From NCBI GenBank assembly GCA_950097015.1, contig CATNEN010000027.1, positions 682,001 through 746,000 on the forward strand: a stretch of DNA of 64,000 nucleotides, given 5' to 3'. Under the pieces are notes generated by a model, which saw nothing but the letters and a program-made list of their open reading frames with translations, made no database searches and was not told the origin of the DNA. Origin of the DNA: Macrostomum hystrix. Taxonomy: Eukaryota; Animalia; Platyhelminthes. A program made the translations under genes and the position numbers. Positions 5,451 through 52,195 of this stretch are shown here, piece after piece. How positions within the stretch are numbered: position 1 is the stretch's first letter; each line of letters begins with the position of its first letter.

Positions 5451-8400
5451 ATGCCGCAGTTGCTGCCGCTGCCGCTGCTGCTGCCGCTGCTGCTGCTGCT
5501 GCACATGTCAGCGGCTGCCGCTGCCGGCCCAGTCGAGGTTTGGGTGCTCACTCTGGGCGACAGCTGCGGCGGGGTCGGAGTGAACGGCAGCGGCTTGAGA
5601 ATCTCCAGCCTGTTCAACACCACCGCCTCCCTTATGCTGCCCTCGAGTCTGTCGGCAGCCTCCATCGCCATCCGGTCCATGCCGCTGACCTGCGACCCAG
5701 CCACCGGACGGCCCGGTCGCGACTCGCTCGGCGCCGTAGTGGCCGCGGTGCTCGACCGTCGCGACCCGCTGGTCTGGCTGGGCTTCCCGCAGCCGGATCT
5801 GTGCCAGCTGGCCGCGGCCTGGACCGGCGTCGGGGCGGCCAACGCCACCGCCGTGTCTTGGAACTGCTTGGACCCGCCGGCGCCGGCGCTGCCGAGTCTG
5901 GCGCCTTCGCTGGCCACTCTGGTGCGCGGCATTGTGACCCTGCTGAATCGGTTCCGCTGGCAGGGCCTGGCGGTGCTGTGGCAGAGCGGCTCCGACTATT
6001 GGCAGCGGGCCGCCTACCAGTTCGGGGCGCAGCTGTCCCTGCTCGACTACGAAATCCCCGCGGCCGCCTTCCTCAGCGTTGGAGCCGACGGCAGCACCGC
6101 GTCCGACGCGCTCGCAAGACTTCGACGTGTCTCCAATGTTAAAGGTTGGCGGCCTTATTCAAATCTTCATGGCTTGTCGTGCAATTTACGCTCTTTTGGG
6201 GGCCAAACTCCAAAACACAGTGAGAGTGTACACTGCCTGACAATGAGAAAGTCGGGGGTTCAACCCCTTACTCCACTGAAACGAATTTGTGTCCTTTAGC
6301 AAGACACGTAACTCTGCATTCTTCAGCTCACCCAGCTGTTAAATTGGTTCCAGCATTAGCTGGGGTAATTGAGGTTATTTTGGCGTCCTGTTTAAAAACA
6401 GAAAACTTAGGTTAACTTGACCTAGATTGACCTAGATTAACAATATGCGCCTCTGCAAAGCACCTTTGGATGCGTTGCGCATAGCTGCGGCCGTGACCTT
6501 CAATGTTCTTTTCTGTGCTCTTTAATGAAGAATAAAGACATATACTTATATTACTAATCTAAATAGCAGTACACGTGCCATTGTGACTCAATATTGCGTT
6601 CGTGGACTCAAGGGCGATCTGAACGGCGGCTGCGTTGTAAAAAATGTTGATCTCTCACGGGCCACCGTGATAGTGGACATTGCTATCAACGCGCTGTTCT
6701 ATTGGCCAATTTCTGTCCTTCTTCCTGCAATTAGTCAGCGTCAGTAGGCAAAAGGGAGGCGCCTCCGCCTGCGATTCTGCTTCAGTTAGTCCTAGCTAGT
6801 GCTTCCTCATTCAGACCACTGGGGCCAGCTGATCTATGCGTTTTTGGGCCAAAGGCTTGCAATTTGAGCTCAGCCCGCCCACTTCCCTTAGATGCCATCA
6901 GTAATTAGCCCCGCGGGAGCCGACCTAGAGGAAGGCAACAGTTTCTCTAGTCTTCCACGCAGCTGCTGCAGGCTTAAGAAACTAGTCATAAAAGACTAAC
7001 TAATAATGCGTTAAAATGAGCTAGCGAGCCCAGCGACAAATGAGAAGGCGCGGGCCGCTTGCTGCGGAATCTGTTTCTCCGCTTCTTACTAATCATGCGA
7101 CGTTTCTGTGCCTCGGCAAGATTGGGAAAGAGAGGCAGAGAGAGGCAGAGAGAGAGAGAGAGAGGGAGAGACAGTAGCGAGAGCAGAAGGCTACAGTCGG
7201 AATCCAGTTGCCGTCCCTGTGCATGTTCAGATATCAAGATGGATTGGGCGCCATGCCGAGTCGGCGCTTTGAAACATACACTTCAACTCGTTTTCTTATT
7301 TGCCTCATCCTCCGTCCTTGCTCAAACTCTGATCTCTCTCCTGTGTTCCTTTCTTCTCATCTCGAAAGCGTCTAGCTGTGATACCCCAGGAATGATGACA
7401 TTTGAGACCGCTCGCCGTCTCTCCTTTGAAAAATGTTGCTATTCGAAGAGACTGGGCCTGAGTGGGGCGAACTGTTTTGGTCCTCAAATCTGGCCTAATT
7501 AAATTTGCTTTGCTAGGCCTAGGTAAATTAGGCTCTCATTAATTCAGGTGATTTCTTGTTGCACTGATACAGACAACTGGTCAATGCTTGCCAGTCAAAG
7601 CACTCGCGTGTCGCAATAAATCTCATGAATAGAGAGCTAGAGTAGCTATTTGAAATGTTGATGACGAGGTATATCAGACGAACAGCTTCGTTTGTGAGTT
7701 CTTATGGACGAGGTGTCGAATGTAGTCTTGGTTCATGAATGATATGGTAGTAATAGAGGTATAGAATACAGGTTTTGGTTTATGAATGGTAGTTGTTGAG
7801 GTTTCGAATGCAGGTCTTGGTTTGTGAATTTTACTTGTCGGCGTATCGAATGTAGTTGATTTGTGAATGGTGATGTAAAATAGAATTTTTACACAAAAAC
7901 TATGCACTCTCAATCGCCAACTTCTCAAAATCCGCAGTGGTCATTCTGCTGATGGAGACGCCAGTTGCAGTAGACACGATCCAGGCATCCAGGACCCTAG
8001 GATACTCAGACGCGGCCTATATTTTCCTTCTAATTAGCGAAACGGTACACCTGGCGGACCTGACGTTTGCCTGGAACAGTCTGCTGGCTGCCAAAGACGG
8101 CCTGAACTCCTCGGCAGCCGGGTCCCTGGTGATTCTGGGCGCCCTGCCCGCCGGAGCCAATGCCACGTCAGATAGCTCCGACACTCGCGTAGGACAGAGG
8201 GTCAGTCGGTGCATATTTTTGGCACAGCTAGCATTTACCATTTTTTCGCTATTATGTCTGCAAGAGAATCCAGAGCTTCCTTATTGTTTCGCATGCCAGG
8301 TGCACTTCGGCATGCAGACTGGAGTGTCCTGGGCTGCCTTGGCCAGCGCATCTCTCAGCTTTCCAGCCGCTTCCGCCTTCTTTAATCTGACGATTCCACT

Positions 8401-30796: not shown

Positions 30797-33700
30797 ATGT
30801 CCGACTTCAACGCCGTTGCTATGGGCCTGCGCCAAGACTTTGAGCTGTTCTGCTCCGGCACGTCACTTCGCGGCGTCGCCCGCACCGTCAAGGCGCCGAC
30901 GCAGACTCTCCGTTGTCTGTGGACTGTGTACGTGGCCGCAATGGCCGCCTTTCTGGCCACCTGCGTGTGCTTCATTGTCACAGACTACCTCAGCTACAAG
31001 ACAGTCATCCAGACCACCGTGGTGCTGAATGACCCCTTCGTAAGCTGGCCTGCGGTGACCATCTGCCCGCACTATCCGTTCTCAGACAGCGGTCGACGGC
31101 TGTGGCTGGACGGCCGAGTCCTGACGCCCACCAATTTCTCGCGACTGTTGCGCGCCTCGGCGCTGAAGGCATTCAACGCCGGCGATCATCTTGGCGCCGA
31201 GGAGATCTTAGCCAGCGACTCGAAGCGGATCTACTACCAGAACCTGGAGCCAGCCGACTCGGAGAGGCTCAGCCACAGCGCCCATCGGCTGTTCATCTTC
31301 TGCATCAAAAGCACGGGCTCGTTCATGGAGATGAGCGGCGGTGAGGCCTGCGCCCTGCAGCTGAAGCTGGTCAGCCTGCCGGACTATTTCAACTGCTTCC
31401 AGGTGCAGGTGAGTCTGCAGTCAGCTAATTGTTCCTAGTTTCACTGCTGTGTGTATGCTTGTGTGTGAGTGGCTGTGTGGGAGTGGCTGTGTGTGAGTGG
31501 CTGTGTGTGAGTGGCTGTGTGAGTGACTGTGTATGTGAGTGACTGTGTGTGTGAGTGACTGTGTGTGTGAGTGACTGTATGTGTGAGTGACTGTGTATGT
31601 GAGTGACTGTGTGTGTGAGTGACTGTGTGTGAGTGACTGTGTGTGTGAGTGGCTGTGTGTGAGTGGCTGTGTGTGAGTGACTGTGTGTGTGAGTGACTGT
31701 GTGTGTGAGTGGCTGTGTGTGTGAGTGACTGTGTGTGTGAGTGACTGTGTGTGTGAGTGACTGTGTGTGTGAGTGACTGTGTGTGTGAGTGACTGTGTGT
31801 GTGAGTGGCTGTGTGTGAGTGGCTGTGTGTGTGAGTGAATGTGTATGTGAGTGACTGTGTGTGTGAGTGACTGTGTGTGTGAGTGACTGTGTGTGTGAGT
31901 GACTGTGTGTGTGAGTGACTGTGTGTGTGAGTGACTGTGTGTGTGAGTGACTGTGTGTGTGAGTGGCTGTGTGTGAGTGGCTGTGTGTGAGTGACTGTGT
32001 GTGTGGATGACTGTGTGTGAGTGGCTGTGTGTGTGAGTGACTGTGTGTGTCAGTGACTGTGTGTGTGAGTGACTGTGTGTGTGAGTGGCTGTGTGTGAGT
32101 GGCTGTGTGTGAGTGACTGTGTGTGTGAGTGACTGTGTGTGAGTGGCTGTGTGTGAGTGGCTGTGTGTGAGTGGCTGTGTGTGTGAGTGACTGTGTGTGT
32201 GAGTGACTGTGTGTGTGAGTGACTGTGTGTGTGAGTGACTGTGTGTGTGAGTGGCTGTGTGTGAGTGGCTGTGTGTGAGTGACTGTGTGTGTGAGTGACT
32301 GTGTGTGAGTGACTGTGTATGTGAGTGACTGTGTGTGTGAGTGGCTGTGTGTGAGTGACTGTGTGTGTGAGTGGCTGTGTGTGAGTGGCTGTGTGTGTGA
32401 GTGACTGTGTGTGTGAGTGACTGTGTGTGTCAGTGACTGTGTGTGTGAGTGACTGTATGTGTGAGTGACTGTGTATGTGAGTGACTGTGTGTGTGAGTGA
32501 CTGTGTGTGAGTGACTGTGTGTGTGAGTGGCTGTGTGTGAGTGGCTGTGTGTGAGTGACTGTGTGTGTGAGTGACTGTGTGTGTGAGTGGCTGTGTGTGT
32601 GAGTGACTGTGTGTGTGAGTGACTGTGTGTGTGAGTGACTGTGTGTGTGAGTGACTGTGTGTGTGAGTGACTGTGTGTGTGAGTGGCTGTGTGTGAGTGG
32701 CTGTGTGTGTGAGTGACTGTGTGTGTGAGTGGCTGTGTGTGAGTGGCTGTGTGTGTGAGTGAATGTGTATGTGAGTGACTGTGTGTGTGAGTGACTGTGT
32801 GTGTGAGTGACTGTGTGTGTGAGTGACTGTGTGTGTGAGTGACTGTGTGTGTGAGTGACTGTGTGTGTGAGTGACTGTGTGTGTGAGTGACTGTGTGTGT
32901 GAGTGGCTGTGTGTGAGTGGCTGTGTGTGAGTGACTGTGTGTGTGAGTGACTGTGTGTGAGTGGCTGTGTGTGAGTGGCTGTGTGTGAGTGGCTGTGTGT
33001 GTGAGTGACTGTGTGTGTGAGTGACTGTGTGTGTGAGTGACTGTGTGTGTGAGTGACTGTGTGTGTGAGTGGCTGTGTGTGAGTGGCTGTGTGTGAGTGA
33101 CTGTGTGTGTGAGTGACTGTGTGTGAGTGGCTGTGTGTGAGTGGCTGTGTGTGAGTGGCTGTGTGTGTGAGTGACTGTGTGTGTGAGTGACTGTGTGTGT
33201 GAGTGACTGTGTGTGTGAGTGGCTGTGTGTGAGTGGCTGTGTGTGAGTGACTGTGTGTGTGAGTGACTGTGTGTGAGTGGCTGTGTGTGAGTGGCTGTGT
33301 GTGAGTGGCTGTGTGTGAGTGACTGTGTATGTGAGTTACTGTGTGTGTGAGTGGCTGTGTGTGAGTGGCTGTGTGTGAGTGACTGTGTGTGTGAGTGGCT
33401 GTGTGTGAGTGGCTGTGTGTGCATGGCTGTGTGTATGGCAGTGTGTATCTTTATCAGGGACTACTAGAAGTAACCTAGTAGTAGTCAATAGCTTTTCTTT
33501 ACTTTAATTTAGTAGTCATTGGTCAGTGTATGTGAGTTTATGTTTGTGTGTTTGTATGTGGGTGTCTGTCTGTGCATGTGACCGGATGTCAAGTTGCTTT
33601 GATTGACGCAATTTTTCTAAACTGTGTTTTTAACGGCTTCGAAATTTTCCGCCCCCCCAAAAGTGCACCGCAATGCCGAGACTCGCGAATTGCAAAATCA

Positions 33701-34779
33701 CTCATCCATTCCTGTGATTAACTTCGCTCCTCGCAGGCGGCACCCTCCATTGACTCGCTGACACTGGTGCTACGAGTCTCCGACGGTCGTCACGGGCACG
33801 CGGCCGAGCAGCTGGAGCAGGCGTTTGTGCAGGACGCCTTCCAGCAGGCCAGCGGCTTCCGAGTGCAGCTGCAGGAGCACGACCGCTATCCCGAGCCCAC
33901 TGACCGGGGCATCCATGTGGCGCCGGGCAAGATGGTGGAGATCGCCTTTCAGCCAGTCCGCTGGATCGAGGTCGGCAGCCCGAGCGACGCCTGCCTGCCC
34001 GAAAAGACCGCGGCCAGGCGCCGCGTCTTTGACCTCGGACGCAACTTCGCCTACTCGCAGGAGGGCTGCCTGCGACAGGAGCTCGGCCGGCGTGTTCTGC
34101 AGGCCTGCGGATGCCACTACGCCGACATGCTGCGAGAGACGCCGCCGAACAAGACGCACCCCTACTGCGGGGACTATCGCCGCGGTGTCGAGTCGGTCAT
34201 GCGCAGCCGCGCCTGCCTGCTGTCAATGAATTTGGACAGTTTGAAAGCGCACATTGGCAACGCTCACTGCTTGAAGCCATGCCACTACCACGACTTCGAG
34301 ATGGTCACCTCCAAGACAATCTGGAGAGCCGCCAACTGGCAGCTGCACTGGCTGACTTTGCAGGCGCGGGCCTTCAGGGAGCTGGCCACCGCCACCGACC
34401 TGCTGGCAGAGTCTGGCAGCTCGACAGAGAAAAGACGTCAGGCGGAGACGACGCTGACTGCAGCAGAGCGATTGCTGCGCGACTACCTCATGGCGAACAA
34501 CCTGACAGTCGCTCCGGAGTCGGCGCTGATGCTGGAGCCCGGCGGCGAGGACTTCGCCTATGTCACTGTGCGCCGCCAGAGCCGAAACACCATCCAAAAG
34601 GCGGAGACTCTGTCGCTGAGCTTCAGCGCCCTGATGAGCCAAGTCGGTGGCCTGTGCAGCCTCACTTTGGGCCTTACCTGCGCATTCGTGGTTGAATTGA
34701 TTGAGTTATTTATGCTCAAACGGCATCTGACTAGAGAGGCCGCTTGTCGCAATGAGGCTGTTAACAATACGCTCTTACC

Positions 34780-34862
<83 letters not shown>

Positions 34863-34885
34863 AGCTGCAGTCTAAAATGATATGA
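30797..34885 (+). CDS. DEG/ENaC/ASIC-family channel subunit; exons 30797-31408 and 33737-34885
   Basis: FCSGTSLRG N-terminal motif, TM1 LWTVYVAAMAAFLATCVCFIV, WPAVTICP, Cys-rich thumb (YSQEGCLRQ..QACGCHY..YC..CLKPCHYHDF), TM2 LMSQVGGLCSLTLGLTCAFVVELIE; phase-0 GT-AG intron. Confidence 0.9.
31450..33430. repeat. About 2-kb GT-rich compound repeat (GTGAGTGACTGTGTGT / GTGAGTGGCTGTGT) in the DEG/ENaC intron
   Basis: Direct observation; explains the 667-aa H/T/S ORF on the - strand. Confidence 0.95.
34781..34855 (+). repeat. Coding (CAG)23-CAA-CAG tract giving 25 Gln
   Basis: In frame in the DEG/ENaC C-terminus. Confidence 0.95.
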
Positions 34886-37721: not shown

Positions 37722-38315
37722 CGCCGCGTTTACATATTCTGCGAAAAATTGGGTAAACAATTCCTAGCGGCTATGATTTTTTAAAGATTTCGAATCCGCT
37801 CGCTTATGAATTTAGTTCTTTACTTTAAGTAGTATACCGAAGTTTTCAACAATTTCCTATTTTTCTGAAGTAGTGCAATTTGTGCTATTTTTGCAAAACA
37901 ATTGTGAATTTTTCAAAATACAATTCCTTTTTTGTCTCTCGATGCAATCTTTTAATATCCTTTGACTTTCCTGTCATTTACCAAGTCTTCTTGTTGTAGG
38001 CTCTATATGCGTAGAACCTTGATTTAGTCTTCTCAATTCTATAAATTTTATAATTAGGATTTTTAGTCAATCAATTTTATTGCTTTGATTTCACAGTTTT
38101 ACAAGCTTAATTAAACACTCAGACAATGGCTGCTTCATTTTAGTAGCTAATTTTTAGATTTACCAAATTCAAATCAATCAGAACGTTTGTGCAGTAAGTT
38201 TTTTATTTAGAATCAGTTAGTTGTCTTCGTTCTTAAAAGTAAAAAAGGGACCAAAAAGATGTGTTTCTTGCACTAGTCTCTGAGATAAATTTCGCGCCTG
38301 TTGAACGTGGGCAAT

Positions 38316-40686
38316 TGAAATAGTGCGGGTCTTTTGCTAGCCGATGACCGCCCTCATGAAAGATAGGAGTGTGGAAAACGACGATAGAGTCGGAGGTCGA
38401 TCGCTGCTGCCGCGAGTTGTCGCAGAGAGGGATGACGAAGGGAGGGATGAAGGGAGAGATGAAGGGAGAGATGAGGCGGTACAAAGGATGCAAGTGAGTG
38501 GTCCTATTGGCCTCAGGCTGGCCAGTCCCACCCAACCCATAGGCCACAGGCATGACTGCCGTGCCCACCCCTAGCAGTGCTCGAAACCGGCTAAAAGTCT
38601 AAAAAGATGTCGGACTACCCGCAAGCGAATAGGACAGGGCTAGATAGTCTACTGTCATCAGTAGCATGTTCGTAACTGACTCCTAACTTTGGTAGCAGTG
38701 GTCGACTCGGCCTAGGCTCTTGTCTTAGAAATGCGGAAAGGCTATCGGCAAAGCGGATAATGATCGAAGGTAGCGCCACCACCCAATGCGCCTGCGTCGC
38801 CACCGCAGACATTTGGGAACTTGGGTCCCCGGAGCTCGCAGCTCCCAGTTTGTCACACAGATCTTAGACAAGCCGAAAAATAGAGCATTCTGTAACTTCC
38901 GTTTTAGACTAGGGTGAGAACCCCAGAATGGATCGAGTCACGCCTCACAAGGGGATTCCTGAAACTGCGCTACAGTGGTCTAGAAAGGTGGTACTCCGAA
39001 CCCGAATGAGAAATCCATAGCCAGAATCCTACTCATGAGACATTAGACACATTCCGTACATTAGACTGCAGCCTACTCATTAGATAACTAGCGAGCCGAT
39101 TCTGTGTGAGTTGAGGAGAACAGAGGCAGGAGAGATTAAGCTGAACACTGGCTGAGTGATTATGCAAGCAGGAAATTATTAGATCACACCCCTCGCTCCC
39201 ATGGCGGCGGCAGCGAGAGGCGGGGAACAGAAGGGAAACATTAATTGACAAGGGAGGTTGACACGCACTCCTTGATCTGCCAGAAAGAGAGGAAAAACCC
39301 GCCAAGGAATTCCCCCACCCCTAGCAGAGAAACACATGCTACGCTCCGCATATTACTCGCAAATCCCTAGCTCCTTATTACTTTCATGCGCGCTCACAGT
39401 TATCCTCCTGCCGCAGCTTTCAGCTAGGCATCACCAGAGCCCATCCCCCTAATAAGTTAGCCACTCATGATCGAGGGCTGTCTAACGATAAAATAAGAGA
39501 AAGTGGAATGCATAGTAAAAAGGATTTAAGTTGTTATTAAGTTGCCCAATAAGTTAGATAAGCTGTGATTTAATAGTTTTATTAGGCTAAATCAAATCCC
39601 CGCCCTTGCCCTTATTACCCACTAGCTAAATAGTAAATCCCTTAGGGATAGCAATAAAAGTCCGCTGCGCGGGTTACTTATCTGACTACGCTGGTTGACA
39701 GGCTGCAGGCCGTCGATCTCGCGGGGGAATGCAAATGAACGGGGGAAAAGGTGAGGGATTGCTGAGTACAGTTGGCAAGGGGCCAGACTGCAGGGAGCTC
39801 AAGGCTCAATTTGGAGCGCACCTAAGGAGGTGGCTTGCGCTTAAGGGCACTAGCAGGTAGTTGCCTGCTGCTATGCTCTGGAGCCTTAGGCTCAGGGACT
39901 AGGTGCTAGCCTAGAAGGGGGAGAGTCCACGGACCGAGTTCCGGGACCGGACAAGGGAAAAAGGTTGTAAGGGCGGAAAGGGTAGGTTCGGGGGAAGGTT
40001 GCCGGGAAAGGCTCCCGGAAAAAAGGAAAAGGTGTCCTGGGAAGGTTGTCCTAGGGGCAGCGCAGCGCGCTCTCTTAAATAGTCCTGCAACTCCGCCAAC
40101 CTCGCATTCATCAAAATAACCCACATGCTCGCCGGCCTGTCAGCGAGGAATCGGGTCGGCATAATGCCACCCCAATTGCCCACTGAAGCGGCGGCGAGAA
40201 TCGCCAGATGCCCCACTAGGAGCGTCTGCCGGCAGTCGGCCAATGATTGTGATCCCGCCGGGATATGGGAAGCGCAGGCGCCGACCTGCCTATAGTGTCG
40301 TTACATGTATCTAAAGGGGGAAAGGTCATAATCGAGCTTCGGCTCGGGTTACAGTAAAGAAGAGGGACATGAAGAATTAAAGCTCACTCTAAACGCATGA
40401 GTGATCCCGACAATCTGATCGCGGTTTGGAGGGGAATTATAACCTAAACTAGTCCATACAGTATTGCTATTTCCGCGATCAGTCACTCCTACAGGGGACT
40501 AGACAGATCCGAGACAAAGGGAATCGGCGGCTACTTAATTCACCTCCGCCCCAAGTCTGGCCCTAAGATTAATGATGGTGTTCTGCGGCCAGCTGCTATG
40601 TGGGTCGCGATTATTAACTTGCTAAAAATGGAAAAGTTTGGCTGGCTCACAACCCCACTCGATTCCGAAGTACACTCCACATCACA
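38316..40686 (-). repeat. 3' LTR (2371 bp)
   Basis: Six ORFs lying wholly inside the repeat translate identically in both copies at offset 6195. Confidence 0.93.
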
Positions 40687-40706
40687 CCGCCCTTGCTCAC
40701 TTTCAC
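40687..40706 (-). promoter_or_regulatory. Polypurine tract
   Basis: - strand GAAAGTGAGCAAGGGCGG immediately before the TGTGATG start of the 3' LTR. Confidence 0.7.
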
Positions 40707-43700
40707 GTAAGACACTTACGTGCTTACTGTTAGTAGTGGGGTGTCCCGCGAATCGAGGGGGCAAAAACTTACATTACCCTACTGCATACCGTAAAGAATC
40801 CTAAGAAGAAAACCGCTAGAGAAGAAATCCTAAGTTATCGTACGTAACAATACTGCTATAAATAGATTTTGTGCGAGAGTGTAAAAGGTCGGCGCCCCTA
40901 GCGACTAAGGGATAAAGTCCTGAGGGGAGGTGGGTGCGCATTCCGGCTGAGTTAAGGTTGTTCTCGTTGCCCAGGGGTGCCGTGTCCCGGCTCGCCTTCT
41001 CCTCCAGGTGGCTGCAGCTGTCCCCGTCTTTCCTTGCCCGGCTTGGTCTCGGTTGCGCAATCCCGGGAGGCTCCGGCCGTTTTCTCCTTAAGTCCGAGGG
41101 TCCGGCCGTGCTCTTCCCCAGGTGGCTCCGGGTTGGTTGGTCCGTTCGCGCCTTCCCGATTCCGTTGCCGGGCCGTGGTAGCCTCTGATTCGCCGCGCGC
41201 CCAGGTGTTTTCAGCTGGCCGGGCCCGAAAATTCTCGTCGGGCCGGTTGCCTAGCCGTTGTGCGCGGCCCAATCGGCGCTGCAGCTGGTCGCAGCTGGGG
41301 AAACCGCTGCTCAGGCCGCTTGTAATGCTGTTGCCGGCCGAGGTGTCTCCTCACCGAAAAGGTCAGGGCCCCAACAACTAAACTGTTACCATGAGCCCCC
41401 TAAACTGGTTCTGCCCGGAATTCCCACTTTGCTCCCATTGGCTGGCGGTTAGACCGCCACGTCTCCCTAAATTAGCCCTATAAAAGCAAACACTGGACGC
41501 CCCATTAACCTCAAGCCTGTTATCTCGTAAACACAAAATAAATCTGACTGCAATTGCCGCCATACTGAATCTGACATCCTTGTGAATCGCGTACGTCCTG
41601 ACTACATAATGGCCCAGCAGCAACCTGACGGAGAGAGGTGAGTTATTACTTCTACTCGGCCCCCCAAGGCCGGTTATTAAGGATTATTGCGAGGGTTATT
41701 GCATGAGAATTAGAATAACTAGAATCCCCCCCTACCCACGGCACGCCATCTATCCCGAGAATCTGAAATTGACCCCGACCCGAACTGTGACAAACCCTCC
41801 CCCAAATATAGATAGATTACATTGTGAGTTATTTGAAATGCAATTACCCGCTCTATTCCTAGATGAACATTACTGCTCAAGTTTTACAACCGCCTAGTAA
41901 CCAAAAAAACTAACTGATAGACTGTCAATGAGTTTTGAAACGTCTGGAACCTTAATTCATGCGATTTATTACTATTCCACCCCTCCAGGTACCTAGATTT
42001 GAATGCCCAGCTGCTAACTTCTGGCTCCCAAATAATGTTTTTTTTTTCTGACCCCTCTAATCCTAACAAAGGAAAAGTTATCATTTTTAAAATCTGTCGT
42101 TCATTGAAACAGCCAGATTGTTTTCCCTCCCAGAGTTTGAATACCTGATCCTACCGGCCTCTTGATTTACGACCGCCCACTCTTTAAACAAACATTAAGA
42201 AGAAAATTCCCGAAACATACCACCCCGCTCACTTTAGCGGGTTGGTATACCCCCTAAATAGAAGCCGGTATAGCTAAACTCCCGAAACCAAGCATAGAGA
42301 ACATGTAAGATAAGCAAGTTTGCGAAAAGTAAGTGCGAACCCTAGTTTGCGGCAGTTATTACGAAAACGTTTCATGCGAAAATTCTTACGAAGGGGAATT
42401 TCACCCCACTAAATATGTTTTTGGATTTTGATTAGTTTATATAAGTTTTTAAGAGGTTTTGGCGCCGAGATGGCCTTTTTTTGATTTGAACCGCCTTCCC
42501 ACCCTTAAAGAAAACATAGAATTTCCCAAGGCATACCACCCCGCTCACTTTAGCGGGTTGGTGTCCCTCCTAATTTAGAAGTTGTCCTAAATTGAACTCC
42601 CACAGACCCACCAATAAGAACAAGATAAGGCAGAGGTGCCATGCATGATGTGGTGCGATTAAAGTAAAATGCTCTTTAAGAAAAGAAGGTGCATGCCCTA
42701 GATTGCTACAATTAGATAGGCATCTCATGCGAAAAAGTACTAGGGGAATTTCACCCCACTAGGTATGTTTTTGGGTTTCTGGCTAAATTATAAGAATTTT
42801 TATGAGATTTTTGTGCCAAGGCGGCTTTGATGAAAAAGAAAAACAGTTAGTGAGAAGATGTAGCTCGCTAAGCAAAATGATTTGGAGGAGGGCTTGGTCC
42901 CCTAGCGCGACCGTGTGGGTGCGTCTGGGCCCGCGCGGCTGTGCGCTGCCTACCCTCAGTCTGGGTCAGCGTCACTCGATGTAGCCCAGGGCTCGGAGCC
43001 GATCTCGGATTCGCGGAAACGAATCCTTCTGGCATAGCCCCAGCGCTCGGGAGGTCTGATGCCTTCCCGAGGTCGCAGTTGCGTGCAGAGGCCGCCTTTC
43101 CTGGCCCCTCTCCGCGGGGACAGCCCTACCTCCAATCGGACGGGGGCGCCAATTGTCTCGACGACCTCACCCTCCTGGTCGGACATTTTCGGCCAAAAGA
43201 GGAATGAGGGTTTTGCGAATGAAAAAGAGGGGGTCTGTCGCTAATGCAACAATGGGGGAGGAGAGGAACAGGGAAGACACAGATCACGACTGGGGATCGT
43301 GCGAGGGGGAAAGAAAATGAGCCTGAGCTGTCAAGTCCAGCCCTGATTAATGATGCGGCGAATTCCCTACTCCTAGCAAGCAACCCTACCGCAAAAAGGA
43401 TCAAAGATCAATGAGAGAGAAAAAGGGCCCAGGGCCCTGGCTAGCTTTGCTTCCAGCCTTGGCTACTGACAACTGTTTGCGCGCACTTAAGTTTGGGACA
43501 TAGAAGTCTAGGTTTTAACTTAGCACTCGTTCTGCAACCCTATAGCGGACTGTTGCACTATAGGTACGGCGGGGTCAGTACTACTGCAAGCTTGCGCCTG
43601 CAACAGCCTATCACCCTACCTTGGAAAGTACACGCCTCAATAAGATACTCAGAGGAGGGATAATCCCCGACTCGTTCAGGGAGTCATCGATTCCCGGCTG

Positions 43701-44491
43701 CATTGCCGGGGGCCCCCCTCGCGATTTACGAGACTGGGAAGCCCAGGGGGGATATACCTGGGATCTCGCTCGGGTAGGAGTCCATGGCTAAAGCCTGGCT
43801 ACCCCATTTAGAAAACCCCCCAGAGAATCTCTTAGAAAAACGTGCCGACCGAATTCTAGCCCATACTTGAAGTAGGCAGCTTCGAGAGGCGGGCACGGGG
43901 GTCGCTAGACCTCCCTCAGAAGTCCCACCTCCCTAACTGTTCCCCACCAAAGTCAGACTTGGTCAAAGCTATGTGACACATTCAGAATCAGGTACACGTA
44001 AGCAGGCCCGCAAGCTGCCCAAGAGAACCAATCCCCGGTGCTCAGCGAGTCATCGATTCCCGGCTGCATTGCCGGGGGCTCCCCTCGCTCGGTTAGAAGG
44101 CCGAAAGGCGTTGCCCGGTCCCTCGTTAAGAATGGCCCCTCCCAGAACAGTCACGCAGGAAACCCCACAGACAGTCCCTGACTCCTGCAGCAGCCACATA
44201 ACCCGAAGACACTCTAGCATGAAGTCCGCTCACACAGCCTACTCTTAGTAGAAAGTCACTAATCAGAAATTTTGGAAATCCTAACAAAATCCTTACATTA
44301 AAGTCCGAATCAAATTGAAACTGTTCAAGAAAATTAATTGACAGTTACTCGAACTGAAGTCCAGTCTCTAGAGATAAGATTTAGGCATACGGAAGATGAA
44401 ATCTAGAAGAAGCCCTTACGGCTAACTACCACAGAAATCTGCGGCGCTAAACTAACAATTGAAATTCAAGTTCGTTTCGCGCCCCTTCTAG

Positions 44492-44509
44492 ATCCCACCG
44501 CTGCCACCA
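44492..44509 (-). promoter_or_regulatory. tRNA-Leu primer-binding site
   Basis: - strand TGGTGGCAGCGGTGGGAT, 1 nt after the 5' LTR; complementary to the conserved tRNA-Leu(AAG/TAG) 3' end ATCCCACCGCTGCCA-CCA. Confidence 0.92.
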
Positions 44510-44510
44510 T

Positions 44511-46881
44511 TGAAATAGTGCGGGTCTTTTGCTAGCCGATGACCGCCCTCATGAAAGATAGGAGTGTGGAAAACGACGATAGAGTCGGAGGTCGATCGCT
44601 GCTGCCGCGAGTTGTCGCAGAGAGGGATGACGAAGGGAGGGATGAAGGGAGAGATGAAGGGAGAGATGAGGCGGTACAAAGGATGCAAGTGAGTGGTCCT
44701 ATTGGCCTCAGGCTGGCCAGTCCCACCCAACCCATAGGCCACAGGCATGACTGCCGTGCCCACCCCTAGCAGTGCTCGAAACCGGCTAAAAGTCTAAAAA
44801 GATGTCGGACTACCCGCAAGCGAATAGGACAGGGCTAGATAGTCTACTGTCATCAGTAGCATGTTCGTAACTGACTCCTAACTTTGGTAGCAGTGGTCGA
44901 CTCGGCCTAGGCTCTTGTCTTAGAAATGCGGAAAGGCTATCGGCAAAGCGGATAATGATCGAAGGTAGCGCCACCACCCAATGCGCCTGCGTCGCCACCG
45001 CAGACATTTGGGAACTTGGGTCCCCGGAGCTCGCAGCTCCCAGTTTGTCACACAGATCTTAGACAAGCCGAAAAATAGAGCATTCTGTAACTTCCGTTTT
45101 AGACTAGGGTGAGAACCCCAGAATGGATCGAGTCACGCCTCACAAGGGGATTCCTGAAACTGCGCTACAGTGGTCTAGAAAGGTGGTACTCCGAACCCGA
45201 ATGAGAAATCCATAGCCAGAATCCTACTCATGAGACATTAGACACATTCCGTACATTAGACTGCAGCCTACTCATTAGATAACTAGCGAGCCGATTCTGT
45301 GTGAGTTGAGGAGAACAGAGGCAGGAGAGATTAAGCTGAACACTGGCTGAGTGATTATGCAAGCAGGAAATTATTAGATCACACCCCTCGCTCCCATGGC
45401 GGCGGCAGCGAGAGGCGGGGAACAGAAGGGAAACATTAATTGACAAGGGAGGTTGACACGCACTCCTTGATCTGCCAGAAAGAGAGGAAAAACCCGCCAA
45501 GGAATTCCCCCACCCCTAGCAGAGAAACACATGCTACGCTCCGCATATTACTCGCAAATCCCTAGCTCCTTATTACTTTCATGCGCGCTCACAGTTATCC
45601 TCCTGCCGCAGCTTTCAGCTAGGCATCACCAGAGCCCATCCCCCTAATAAGTTAGCCACTCATGATCGAGGGCTGTCTAACGATAAAATAAGAGAAAGTG
45701 GAATGCATAGTAAAAAGGATTTAAGTTGTTATTAAGTTGCCCAATAAGTTAGATAAGCTGTGATTTAATAGTTTTATTAGGCTAAATCAAATCCCCGCCC
45801 TTGCCCTTATTACCCACTAGCTAAATAGTAAATCCCTTAGGGATAGCAATAAAAGTCCGCTGCGCGGGTTACTTATCTGACTACGCTGGTTGACAGGCTG
45901 CAGGCCGTCGATCTCGCGGGGGAATGCAAATGAACGGGGGAAAAGGTGAGGGATTGCTGAGTACAGTTGGCAAGGGGCCAGACTGCAGGGAGCTCAAGGC
46001 TCAATTTGGAGCGCACCTAAGGAGGTGGCTTGCGCTTAAGGGCACTAGCAGGTAGTTGCCTGCTGCTATGCTCTGGAGCCTTAGGCTCAGGGACTAGGTG
46101 CTAGCCTAGAAGGGGGAGAGTCCACGGACCGAGTTCCGGGACCGGACAAGGGAAAAAGGTTGTAAGGGCGGAAAGGGTAGGTTCGGGGGAAGGTTGCCGG
46201 GAAAGGCTCCCGGAAAAAAGGAAAAGGTGTCCTGGGAAGGTTGTCCTAGGGGCAGCGCAGCGCGCTCTCTTAAATAGTCCTGCAACTCCGCCAACCTCGC
46301 ATTCATCAAAATAACCCACATGCTCGCCGGCCTGTCAGCGAGGAATCGGGTCGGCATAATGCCACCCCAATTGCCCACTGAAGCGGCGGCGAGAATCGCC
46401 AGATGCCCCACTAGGAGCGTCTGCCGGCAGTCGGCCAATGATTGTGATCCCGCCGGGATATGGGAAGCGCAGGCGCCGACCTGCCTATAGTGTCGTTACA
46501 TGTATCTAAAGGGGGAAAGGTCATAATCGAGCTTCGGCTCGGGTTACAGTAAAGAAGAGGGACATGAAGAATTAAAGCTCACTCTAAACGCATGAGTGAT
46601 CCCGACAATCTGATCGCGGTTTGGAGGGGAATTATAACCTAAACTAGTCCATACAGTATTGCTATTTCCGCGATCAGTCACTCCTACAGGGGACTAGACA
46701 GATCCGAGACAAAGGGAATCGGCGGCTACTTAATTCACCTCCGCCCCAAGTCTGGCCCTAAGATTAATGATGGTGTTCTGCGGCCAGCTGCTATGTGGGT
46801 CGCGATTATTAACTTGCTAAAAATGGAAAAGTTTGGCTGGCTCACAACCCCACTCGATTCCGAAGTACACTCCACATCACA
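44511..46881 (-). repeat. 5' LTR (2371 bp)
   Basis: Copy of 38316-40686; followed by the PBS. Confidence 0.93.
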
Positions 46882-47057
46882 ATAAATAATGTATTTACAC
46901 AATCAAATGAGTTTAATTTTACACATAATACGGAATACATTGACACAATCTCCACGTAAACATGCTTCATATTGGCAACTGTACATTGGAAATATGAAAC
47001 TCGCATTCAAAGTTATTTAATGTCCTTGATAAAAATCATGTGTACAAACAATCTGCG

Positions 47058-50000
47058 CTATACAGTGGCATTCCTGTTGGCCCAATCCGGGAATTCGCTT
47101 AGACCAAAAAGTGACGGCGCGTAGGACAGAGTGGCTGCAGCGACCAGGGCGTTTGACACCAGCCAGGTGATGCTGCCCGTGCGCAGCTGAAGTGAAGGAG
47201 ATTTTGGTAATTACTATTGATAATTGTACACATTTTGGGTGCACGTGATGGTATGTGTGGTTGTTACGTCAATCCGCTGGACCCGTGCAGATTTCGCAAG
47301 CTCACCATATCCCAGGGACGCAGGTAGCACCCCTGAGTACACCAGAATGTTAGCTAAGCCTCACCATATCCCAGGGACGCAGGTAGCCCCCTGAGTACAC
47401 CAGAATGATAGCTAAGCCTCACCATATCCCAGGGACGCAGGTAGCACCCCTGAGTACACCAGAATGTTAGCTAAGCCTCACCATATCCCAGGGACGCAGG
47501 TAGCCCCCTGAGTACACCAGAATGTTAGCTAAGCCTCACCATATCCCAGGGACGCAGGTAGCCCCTTGAGTACACCAGAATGTTAGCTAAGCCTCACCAT
47601 ATCCCAGGGACGCAGGTAGCCCCCTGAGTACACCAGAATGTTAGCTAAGCCTCACCATATCCCAGGGACGCAGGTAGCCCCCTGAGTACACCAGAATGAT
47701 AGCTAAGCCTCACCATATCCCAGGGACGCAGGTAGCCCCCTGAGTACACCAGAATGTTAGCTAAGCCTCACCATATCCCAGGGACGCAGGTAGCCCCTTG
47801 AGTACACCAGAATGTTAGCTAAGCCTCACCATATCCCAGGGACGCAGGTAGCCCCCTGAGTACACCAGAATGTTAGCTAAGCCTCACCATATCCCAGGGA
47901 CGCAGGTAGCCCCCTGAGTACACCAGAATGATAGCTAAGCCTCACCATATCCCAGGGACGCAGGTAGCACCCCTGAGTACACCAGAATGTTAGCTAAGCC
48001 TCACCATATCCCAGGGACGCAGGTAGCCCCCTGAGTACACCAGAATGTTAGCTAAGCCTCACCATATCCCAGGGACGCAGGTAGCCCCTTGAGTACACCA
48101 GAATGTTAGCTAAGCCTCACCATATCCCAGGGACGCAGGTAGCCCCCTGAGTACACCAGAATGTTAGCTAAGCCTCACCATATCCCAGGGACGCAGGTAG
48201 CACCCCTGAGTACACCAGAATGATAGCTAAGCCTCACCATATCCCAGGGACGCAGGTAGCCCCCTGAGTACACCAGAATGTTAGCTAAGCCTCACCATAT
48301 CCCAGGGACGCAGGTAGCCCCCTGAGTACACCAGAATGTTAGCTAAGCCTCACCATATCCCAGGGACGCAGGTAGCCCCCTGAGTACACCAGAATGTTAG
48401 CTAAGCCTCACCATATCCCAGGGACGCAGGTAGCCCCTTGAGTACACCAGAATGATAGCTAAGCCTCACCATATCCCAGGGACGCAGGTAGCACCCCTGA
48501 GTACACCAGAATGATAGCTAAGCCTCACCATATCCCAGGGACGCAGGTAGCACCCCTGAGTACACCAGAATGTTAGCTAAGCCTCACCATATCCCAGGGA
48601 CGCAGGTAGCCCCTTGAGTACACCAGAATGATAGCTAAGCCTCACCATATCCCAGGGACGCAGGTAGCACCCCTGAGTACACCAGAATGTTAGCTAAGCC
48701 TCACCATATCCCAGGGACGCAGGTAGCACCCCTGAGTACACCAGAATGTTAGCTAAGCCTCACCATATCCCAGGGACGCAGGTAGCCCCTTGAGTACACC
48801 AGAATGATAGCTAAGCGTCACCATATCCCAGGGACGCAGGTAGCACCCCTGAGTACACCAGAATGTTAGCTAAGCCTCACCATATCCCAGGGACGCAGGT
48901 AGCACCCCTGAGTACACCAGAATGTTAGCTAAGCCTCACCATATCCCAGGGACGCAGGTAGCACCCCTGAGTACACCAGAATGTTAGCTAAGCCTCACCA
49001 TATCCCAGGGACGCAGGTAGCCCCTTGAGTACACCAGAATGATAGCTAAGCCTCACCATATCCCAGGGACGCAGGTAGCCCCTTGAGTACACCAGAATGT
49101 TAGCTGGCGTGGAGATGGGCAGGATGAAAGCGAACGAACACGAGGCCGTGCAGGCCAACATGAAGTGGAACGGATGCAAGTGCAGTTTCTCGCTCTGAAA
49201 AGTAAAACCATGGTGTCAAAGGTGATTACTGGTGTTCAGTAGTATGTTATTGCTCAAGTTGAGCTAATATTAAACTTACCAGACTGGATAAGATAGGCAG
49301 CAGGATGGTGGCAGCGGTACCGTTGGAGGTCCACTCGGTTAGGAGGGCGGAGCACCAGCAGATGATGAAGATCAGAGCTGGGGCCGGCATGACATTCAGC
49401 GCCACCATTTGGCTGCCAATCCAGTCAGATAAGCCGGAGACCTGCCGGGGCCGGGGATTTGAAAGAATCAATGACTCAACGGATTTGAGCATGCTTTGGG
49501 TTCCTATCGCAAATATGTTGAGACTCACCCTGGCCAAATCGGCAAGCGCGAACCCGGCACCCAGCATGAGAACAATCTGCCAAGCCACTCGCTTCTGCAC
49601 CAGATCCCAGCTCAGCAGCCGCGTCGGCCGTCCGCGCAGACGATCCACCGAGTCACTGTCGATGCCATCAGAGCTGCCGACAGTGTCAACATCGACTACT
49701 GTGTCATCGACCTTGAACTCGATCTCGGGCTGCTGTCTGCCGTTCTCCAGGACAGCAGCAGATGCCGACGCAGCCGCTACCACAACGGCGGGGGCAGTTT
49801 TCCTCGCCGAGGCGATGGCTTTAAACGGGGCGGCAAACGGATTCGTTGAGGGCAGCAGGAAGAGCAGCAGCACGGCTAGCACTGCGGGCTGCGTGTCGCT
49901 CATCAGACTGATCGGCTTGGCGCCTTCGGAGGCACCGTTAGGTTGCTTCATGAACAAGGCCGACCAGCCCGGAGCTCCCGGCTGGCGCGAGATCCACAGG

Positions 50001-52195
50001 GCCACGGTGAGGCAGAACACGGCCAGCACGCTGCCTTCTGCGTAGCTGAGTGAGCCCAGCTGCTTGTACTGCTGCTGCAGGGACGATCGACTCCTGCGAG
50101 CCTCCGTGTCGGACACTGCGCGGCCAGCTGCAGCCATGCCACTGCAGTTTGTGGGAATCGGTGTAGCGACAATTAAAACTGCGATCGAATATGGCTACGC
50201 TTTGTTTTATTTTCCATAAAAATGTATTTACTATATTAGCCCGTAAAAAATGGCTGCGTTGCGAATGCTTAGACGAGTCGAGAATGCTCAAAAATTTTCT
50301 TTTCTTTTCTAGCATTCGCCTGACCAAGTCCGCTCAATAGTAAACAACTGACTCATGGCCGAAAGAACAGCTATTTGGATAGTGAGAGAGGAAGACAGAA
50401 TTCAACAGATTGGAAGGAAAAAGGCAAACTATAAGCAAAGTAGATAGACGGTGCCACAGTCGAAATCTTGTCATAGTCGAAATTGTTTAGTTTAAATTAA
50501 TTAATCCGGGCCATAGATCCGCCAGTAAGCGAAGTTGTAGCCCAGTGGGTATACATTCAAACACTTAGACAGGATGCCAGGTTCTAGTCTTGGCCCTACT
50601 GCAATATTTTTCACCATAAACTCGGCTATCTTCAGGACCAACTGGGCTAAGCGGAATTTCTATCTGCCGGCAATCTTTTATTGTAAGAGGAAGGTGAGAA
50701 TGCTTTGCTGAATCTAGCCATGACTCACCGGAAGCCCAGGAAGCTGATCTGGAGCCAGAGCCAGGCCAGGAGCAGGCCGAGAGCGCCCAGCGGCAGGGCA
50801 AATAACATCCAGCTATAGTAGTTCAGTCCCGTCCCGGATCCGTAGTACTCCTGCACAATGCCGTTAAGAATAACGTTTGGCGCTGTGCCTGTCAAAGTGA
50901 CAACGCCGCCGAAGACGGAGCCGTATGAGATGCCGAGGAGGAGCATGCGGCATGTGCTGGCGAAGTGTGCATTCTCCTTCTGCGCCAGATAGTCTTTTAG
51001 CGGCGTCTGATTTGCTGTCTCGGATTCGTCTCCATCGTCTCCATCGTCTCCATCGTCATCGGCGGCTGCAGTGGAAGTCCTGCTATCGTTGTCGTCGGTG
51101 TTTTCATTTGTTTGATTATGTGGTGGCAGTGGTGGGATCGAAATCTCTACAGCCGGGGCAGACAAATCGCCTGCCGAGTTCTCCATGGCGTCCTCGGCGG
51201 CAGAGACGGCGGTGGACACAACGCTTGGCGCTGCCTCCGTCGCTCTGAGTGCCTCGTGTCGCTTCTGACGGGCGTGCTGCTGCTGAAGCTGAACTAGCAT
51301 GGCCTCCACAATGGGTAGCATCATGGCCACGGTGGCTGTGTTAGATATCCACATGGAAAGCAGCCACGCCGGCGTCAGTAGGCCCAGGAGGAGCCTAGGA
51401 TATGAGGAAATGCCATTTCTCTGATTATGAGTCTGTGATTAAAAAGGTACTGAGCAACAACTAGCCCAATTCGTGCGCTGACGTGCGCCAAGTCCTGTCA
51501 CTAACCCCACTGTAGCCCGGTAACTGCTTATTAAAACGCCATAAAATGTCGTTAATCCGAAAAACACGACAGGCAATAAATCCATCGCCTCTCACCATCT
51601 GGGCTGGACGCCACACAGGATAAGAATTTTAAGTGCGATCCTCTTGTGCAGATTCCAGGCTTCGATGGACACCGCCATTATAAGGCCGCCGAGAAATAGC
51701 ATATTGGAGTCCTGTGCAGTAGATCGATTGGTGTCACTTTAAAACTCGATTTTAATTGCTCAGTCAACCGAAACGAACTTGTGGATTTCTAAGAAATGAG
51801 ATGCGATCGAATTACCTTGAAATAGCTGGGACAGATTTCGCGGCTAGGCATAATGCCCAGTAGCGGAGCCAGTATCACTGGCAGCAAGGCCGTGGCGCCA
51901 AGCGGTGCAACTTCAAAGTTCCAGTAGAACGACATGATGATAATGATGAAAGCAGCCTTGGACACCTGGGAAATCCGAGTGTGATATTTAACTTTTCTTT
52001 AACATTCGAGTTAGAAGATTATTGTAACAAATCGCGACGTACCGACGTGTTAACAACCAGAACGAGTGGCAATAGAGACAGAGGCACAGCGACCAGCACA
52101 ACAATGGCCCGATGCTTGAGCAGTAGTTTGAAAATCTTCACTAGAATGCCAGCAACGGAAGCCAGGCGTGCGACAGTTGAGTCCATCGCAATCAT
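47058..52195 (-). CDS. SLC13 Na+/dicarboxylate-citrate-sulfate cotransporter (NaDC/NaCT/Indy family); exons 52195-52043, 51965-51816, 51711-51596, 51394-50729, 50141-49529, 49441-49280, 49194-49057, 47186-47058
   Basis: [46 protein letters not shown] (SNT motif 1), [27 protein letters not shown] (motif 2), [21 protein letters not shown]; GT-AG junctions with consistent phases. Confidence 0.95.
47299..49105 (-). repeat. 58/59-bp tandem repeat, about 31 copies, made of the end of SLC13 exon 7 plus its GTGAG donor
   Basis: - strand unit GCTAACATTCTGGTGTACTCAAGGGGCTACCTGCGTCCCTGGGATATG|GTGAGGCTTA. Confidence 0.95.

Follow-up and report, generated by a model that had tools for sequence, protein, structure and literature searches.

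How an element without a coding cassette has come to be copied, and whether its interior represents a lineage of its own or the remains of something else, is the question raised by a long terminal repeat (LTR) retrotransposon of the flatworm Macrostomum hystrix, which lies in the window analysed here, a stretch of 64,000 nucleotides (contig CATNEN010000027.1, positions 682,001 to 746,000; C27:682001-746000) of a 220-Mb assembly in 42 contigs (GCA_950097015.1). The original prediction had described a very young, non-autonomous element resembling the large retrotransposon derivatives (LARDs), built around a separate structured non-coding core and mobilized by an autonomous partner that was yet to be found. 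Comparison with related copies in the genome indicates that the element is very probably a non-autonomous internal-deletion derivative of a young, multi-copy LTR family of the Ty3/gypsy type, in which it is the representative of a class referred to here as class D. A partner is present among its sister copies, which encode reverse transcriptase (RT), RNase H and integrase in one long open reading frame (ORF), and the supposed core proves to be the leader and the 3' non-coding region of these coding sisters, joined around a 3.9-kb deletion.

The element is bounded by an exact direct repeat (38314-40686 and 44509-46881; 2373 bp, no mismatches, spacing 6195 bp), within which the LTR limits were fixed by comparing the ends of 17 family copies. 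Since the two nucleotides ahead of TGATGTGG vary among the 5' LTRs of these copies, the true LTRs are 2369 bp in length, neither the 2373 bp of the repeat nor the 2371 bp first proposed; their terminus reads ATTTCA in all compared copies but one (AGTTCA), and the TG...CA ends and the lack of differences between the two LTRs were as predicted. The two additional identical bases at either end of the repeat arise because the 4-bp target duplication is by chance the same as the nucleotides that adjoin the LTRs on their inner side. Located at C27:720312-728883, the element measures 8564 bp between its outer LTR ends. Immediately ahead of 44511 the plus strand has the sequence of a tRNA 3' end in sense orientation, which places the element on the minus strand, an orientation that the prediction did not give. 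Read in its own sense, the element has a single A after the 5' LTR and then the primer site TGGTGGCAGCGGTGGGATC, which is 19 nt long and not 18, although the complementarity of 18 nt to a tRNA 3' end was correctly recognized, and the predicted polypurine tract, GAAAGTGAGCAAGGGCGG, is found two nucleotides (TG) ahead of the 3' LTR.

Investigation of the genome gave at least 40 matches to the LTR and at least 72 to the interior, and a 20-mer at the LTR start located 16 LTR pairs, the spacings of which sort into four in class A, seven in class B, four in class C and one in class D; the element thus belongs to a multi-copy family with at least 16 paired-LTR copies. Sixteen family copies (L025-L040) were read, and the census of the family is incomplete. 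All copies have LTRs, primer site, 1.3-kb leader and a 3' non-coding region of about 2.2 kb in common, and they differ in their middles. Class A (L025-L028) has an ORF of 1397-1429 aa, with an N-terminal Gag-like part of about 350 aa followed by the domains RVT_1, RT_RNaseH, Integrase_H2C2 and rve in the order typical of gypsy elements (RT, RNase H, integrase), and the database proteins closest to it are Ty3/gypsy polyproteins with up to 46% identity. Class B (L029-L034; one copy of the class is located at C29:6419282-6429479) has a different Gag-like ORF of about 340 aa, a frame-shifted aspartic protease (LIDTGS) and a third ORF (ORF3) of about 200 aa, class C (L035-L040) has only the first 480 bp or so of a B-like cassette with a 201-aa ORF (a Gag stump), and class D, the window copy, has no coding cassette at all. 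Being without domains, the window copy is placed in the Ty3/gypsy group by the 95-97% DNA identity of its LTRs and leader. The class A cassette is present in about five close copies and the class B cassette in a dozen, with about twenty more at 70-83% identity; no place with both cassettes was detected in cassette searches of the genome.

The relationship of the window copy to class A is apparent from their alignment, which extends from the 5' LTR to position 4483 of L025 and resumes at position 8391, the intervening 3.9 kb being nearly the whole of the ORF for the Gag-like part, RT, RNase H and integrase. The motif CCYCGGG is present at both breakpoints in class A, and one copy of it is left in the window. 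A frame of 76 aa spanning the junction begins with MSDQEGEVVE, as in every class, and its end is related to the last 40 or so residues of class A. About 40 first and 40 last codons of the family's long ORF therefore survive, and the predicted absence of gag, RT, RNase H and integrase from the 3.8-kb interior is correct with regard to domains and to the lack of any ORF above 134 aa, the longest being without a protein domain, but not with regard to these remnants. The window copy retains every part required in cis, namely LTRs, primer site, leader, 3' non-coding region and purine tract. The pattern of microhomology would fit either reverse transcriptase having jumped on its template or microhomology-mediated repair.

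The deleted form is not confined to the window. A stretch of 161 bp spanning the junction recurs with 97-98% identity at four other places, compared with 70-87% identity to the sampled class A copies, and the junction is thus known at five places in all, the window copy included. The two sites on C39, which are 6273 bp apart, form a tandem LTR-interior-LTR-interior arrangement, as each has the 25-mer of LTR end and primer site at the expected distance; the region G000:C39:13374000-13387000 accordingly contains two class D units head to tail. Outside the junction stretch, the four other copies are 82-88% identical to the window copy. The prediction of a non-autonomous, Leu-primed element copied by proteins made elsewhere is supported.

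Regarding activity, the two LTRs of a copy agree at 99.5-100% in each of the 14 copies tested, which cover every class: those of the window copy, in agreement with the very young age proposed for it, are identical over their whole length, those of the one class A copy tested are 100% identical and flanked by a target duplication of its own, and the 12 other copies outside class A are in the range of 99.5-100%. Four other copies in which both outer flanks are readable have different 4-bp duplications (TTAA, CTGG, TAGG and ATTA). Between copies the LTRs differ by 3-10%, and in a maximum-likelihood tree with one LTR per copy the classes are interleaved, with nine changes of label compared with a mean of 9.0 after shuffling; the LTRs of L027 (class A) and L031 (class B) are almost identical and group with full support. 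When the window copy was compared in 300-bp windows, nearly all were matched at 98-100% in some sampled copy, with the best-matching copy and its class switching from one window to the next. The junction stretch is the clearest exception, and two more 300-bp windows are matched at about 91-92% only, of which one falls in the LTR and the other in the 3' non-coding region. Since the LTRs fail to group by class and the window copy is a mosaic of the others, the classes seem to share a single pool in which they replicate and recombine, and mosaicism of this kind would be expected if different RNAs of the family are packaged together and templates are switched frequently. An LTR stretch at window positions 45780-46280 (LTR positions of about 800-1100) was observed to be more variable, with best matches of 87-91% compared with 98-100% elsewhere.

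In the life cycle proposed for the window copy, its RNA would be transcribed from the 5' LTR, packaged by Gag of sister elements, probably together with sister RNAs, and reverse-transcribed from tRNA-Leu by the class A reverse transcriptase, with insertion by the class A integrase generating the 4-bp duplication; the insertion itself would be very recent. Several points weigh against so simple a derivation. The identity of only 82-88% between the window copy and the other junction copies would need recombination to explain it, and, two of these copies being in tandem and two on one small contig, some of them may be DNA-level duplicates and not separate insertions. The transcription, packaging and helper of the window copy are inferred, and class A, which is without a protease, may be insufficient as a helper on its own.

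An alternative, considered unlikely, is that the window copy belongs to a true LARD lineage, with a selected and structured non-coding core of its own that evolves apart from the coding elements and shares only the enzymes of a partner. The size of 8.56 kb and the lack of coding capacity fit that label, copies with 12-18% difference elsewhere have the junction in common, the deleted form therefore not being brand new, and the hairpins are invariant. However, the near-complete matching of the element, window by window, to coding sister copies leaves only about 300 bp around the junction as sequence specific to class D, and the sampled copies point to class D having no clade of its own for either the leader or the 3' region. 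Nor do the hairpins and the leader distinguish class D, since they are alike in all classes, and no covariation was seen.

The duplicated hairpins themselves were correctly predicted, both pairs of segments being present in the interior. The leader hairpin has the stem CCCGGC/GCCGGG and the loop AAUGCA, that of the 3' region the stem ACCAACCCGC/GCGGGGUGGU, and they fold modestly better than shuffled sequences (z from -1.2 to -2.6). Their cores are invariant in 17 of 17 copies, coding and non-coding alike, although some copies have one leader hairpin and not two; because they never vary, the structure is neither supported nor refuted by covariation. The alignment of the 17 leaders has a mean column conservation of 0.94 with an invariant start-codon context, and as the whole leader is 94% conserved the hairpins are not conspicuous in it. 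The hairpins may plausibly act in packaging or dimerisation.

It is very improbable that a full-length class A element was inserted at this site and lost its 3.9 kb later through a chromosomal deletion at the microhomology. A junction of this type fits DNA repair equally well as template switching, but the identical junction is present at four other places, its surrounding stretch resembles those copies far more closely than the sampled class A copies, and the zero differences between the LTRs leave little time for such a loss. An assembly artefact, in which a collapsed or mis-joined repeat gives the appearance of an LTR-interior-LTR unit, is scarcely credible: perfect repeats of 2.4 kb are hard to assemble and the family is rich in near-identical pieces, but the 4-bp duplication is clean, the left flank is unique, and the same architecture with identical LTRs is found in 13 other copies on many contigs.

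Both coding cassettes of the sister classes are under purifying selection. For the class A pair L025 and L027, the ratio of nonsynonymous to synonymous substitution rates (dN/dS) is 0.11 for the long ORF overall, 0.05 for the RT/RNase H part and 0.15 for the Gag-like part, and for the class B pair L030 and L031, with a dS of about 1.4, it is 0.15 for Gag, 0.22 for the protease and 0.18 for ORF3, which stays intact between lineages at this distance. With values of 0.05-0.22 in the ORFs of both classes, both cassettes therefore encode working proteins, and the class B design without RT is old. ORF3 has neither a Pfam family nor an atlas lead. The class A N-terminus resembles Retrotrans_gag/Ty3_capsid by language-model features alone (score 0.91), a pointer rather than a test, and the Gag-like proteins of the two classes have marginal similarity to each other (BLASTP, E = 0.11).

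None of the class A ORFs contains a D[TS]G motif or a zinc knuckle according to the motif scan, and permissive Pfam scans gave no protease match even at E = 10; a hidden protease in class A was rejected on the basis of these scans. The aspartic protease between Gag and RT that is a criterion of Ty3/gypsy elements is hence missing from class A, and in this family a protease is present in class B only. In the relatives P0001 and P0004 the protease is located 150-230 residues upstream of the start of homology to class A, at the position where class A has its Gag-like part. Class A may rely on a protease made by class B or another family, and class B may rely on the RT and integrase of class A or of other families. 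It is possible, if somewhat doubtful, that the family is a split, two-part retrotransposon in which class A (Gag-like part, RT, RNase H and integrase) and class B (Gag, protease and ORF3) are mutually dependent, in which case the protein-less window copy and class C would ride on both. Other gypsy families of the genome could supply any of these proteins, which weakens this two-part reading. A narrow literature search found no published reciprocal split in a natural LTR retrotransposon.

Further features of the element concern its priming and expression. The primer tRNA, which we take to be tRNA-Leu(AAG/UAG) by likeness to vertebrate tRNAs, has a T-arm/acceptor string, TCGAATCCCACCGCTGCCA, that occurs at 11 other genomic sites compared with none in a reversed control; these sites are probably host tRNA genes. 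A scan of the window aimed at a direct check of the primer detected no tRNA genes. Two side observations relate to the primer site. A second variant, TGGTGGCATCGAGGTGGGAT, is located just after the 5' LTR in L028-L035 and L039 (classes A, B and C) and is independent of class, and at G000:C38:8388794-8389639 there are at least 27 tandem units, mostly 29 bp apart, with the Leu-type primer-site sequence after the LTR end TTACAC, an array that looks like a satellite derived from the LTR-end/primer-site junction. Regarding the LTR itself, no TATA box was detected in it and AATAAA was found once only. A heat-shock promoter, of the kind present in other families of the genome, was considered and rejected, as the LTR has no arrays of heat-shock elements and single matches are at chance level. 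No Rfam match was obtained in the element at E <= 0.1.

The left flank of the element is unique in the genome according to a genome search, and because of this neither another allele nor a duplicate is available as an empty-site comparison. The insertion would be a few hundred bp from the nearest SLC13-like exon; exons of an SLC13-type symporter are listed in Table 1. A tandem array at 47301-49105, in which a unit of 58 bp is repeated 31 times with 97% identity, begins some 420 bp away from the element, and its unit duplicates the end of an SLC13 exon plus the splice donor. At 47061-47210, a short frame on the minus strand terminates with FPDWAN, which we take to be the SLC13 C-terminus, although Pfam does not confirm it as SLC13; if that reading is right, the element lies about 180 bp downstream of the SLC13 stop codon in the same orientation. 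On the other side of the element, an open frame of 667 aa without a Pfam family (31421-33424, minus strand) adjoins the fragment of the sodium-channel gene.

Table 1. Coordinates of the retrotransposon's parts and neighbours in the window, and of related features elsewhere in the genome (contig or copy named before the colon).
Feature	Position	Strand	Remarks
Target-site duplication, upstream copy in element sense	46880..46883	-	ATTG in sense, CAAT on plus strand
5' LTR	44511..46879	-	2369 bp, TG...CA; 100% identical to 3' LTR; boundary from 17 copies
Primer binding site	44491..44509	-	19 nt, 1 nt past 5' LTR; 18 nt pair with tRNA 3' end ...ATCCCACCGCTGCCA plus CCA
5' leader	43187..44490	-	1.3 kb; common to all classes; candidate packaging/dimerisation region
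Leader hairpin, copy 1	44042..44088	-	z -1.9; core invariant in 17 copies
Leader hairpin, copy 2	43676..43722	-	z -1.2; missing from some sister copies
Remnant ORF, 76 aa	42956..43186	-	Start of Gag-like ORF fused to last ~40 integrase-tail codons
Deletion junction	43066..43072	-	7-nt microhomology CCTCGGG; 3.9 kb of class A coding sequence gone at this site
3' non-coding region	40705..42955	-	~2.2 kb; common to all classes
3' region hairpin, copy 1	42520..42573	-	z -2.2
3' region hairpin, copy 2	42204..42257	-	z -2.6
Polypurine tract	40687..40704	-	Followed by TG, then 3' LTR
3' LTR	38316..40684	-	2369 bp; 100% identical to 5' LTR
Target-site duplication, downstream copy in element sense	38312..38315	-	CAAT on plus strand
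Amiloride-sensitive sodium channel gene, part	33767-34885	+	
SLC13-type sodium:sulfate/carboxylate symporter, exons	49247-51354, 48991-49215	-	
Other junction sites, tandem pair	C39:13382657, C39:13376384		6273 bp apart; each with LTR-end/primer-site 25-mer
Other junction sites	C18:205864, C18:62281		
Class A long ORF	L025:4362-8504 (C18)		Also in L026, L027, L028
Class B ORF3	L030:6006-6611, L031:6051-6695, L032:5911-6651		~200 aa, after protease

With regard to known categories of non-autonomous elements, the length of over 4 kb by which LARDs are defined (as quoted in PMC13570524), taken together with the absence of coding capacity, describes the window copy with its 8564 bp. LARDs, which were first described in Triticeae grasses and are already an annotation class beyond plants, are like the window copy in length, long LTRs, primer site, purine tract, absence of coding and copying in trans. 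They differ from it in that the window interior equals the non-coding parts of its partner, the leader and the 3' region around a deletion, and is not a conserved structured internal domain of its own, in that the partner is identified, and in that the host is an animal. The element is thus a LARD by the definition of size and content, as far as the predicted likeness holds, and by origin a plain deletion derivative of a coding family. At 8.56 kb it is outside the range of TRIM elements (terminal-repeat retrotransposons in miniature; no more than about 1 kb).

LTR elements that are internally deleted and need a helper include BARE2, which depends on BARE1, and Dasheng, which depends on RIRE2. 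Such elements are like the window copy in sharing LTRs and cis signals with a coding partner and in having lost coding sequence, and so are the coding-remnant families of sugar beet (PMC13570524), in which tandem arrangements and recombination with the partner also occur. In contrast to such elements, the flatworm family has one set of LTRs with four interiors, and the LTRs are not sorted by interior. Terminal-repeat retrotransposons with a GAG domain (TR-GAG), in which only Gag is encoded, and elements with GAG and protease only (Coffea, Arabidopsis, Triticeae and sugar beet; PMC13570524) are matched by the sister classes B and C, which are without RT and integrase; unlike these, the window copy has no Gag beyond some 40 Gag-like codons, and class B has a conserved third ORF. 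In plants it is common to find such deletion derivatives, families with GAG and protease only, copies in tandem and categories without sharp limits (PMC13570524).

It is standard LTR retrotransposon biology for deletion derivatives to be carried along by coding relatives, and the window element alone is of little weight in this respect. It does provide a clean case in an animal, in which helper, breakpoint and microhomology are all visible, within a currently active family whose four interior types with unsorted LTRs would be expected if the RNAs are co-packaged and recombine during reverse transcription. If the family does consist of two mutually dependent parts, it would be a natural retrotransposon counterpart to multipartite viruses, and the apparent division of protease and RT/integrase between two element types, both under selection, is directly testable.

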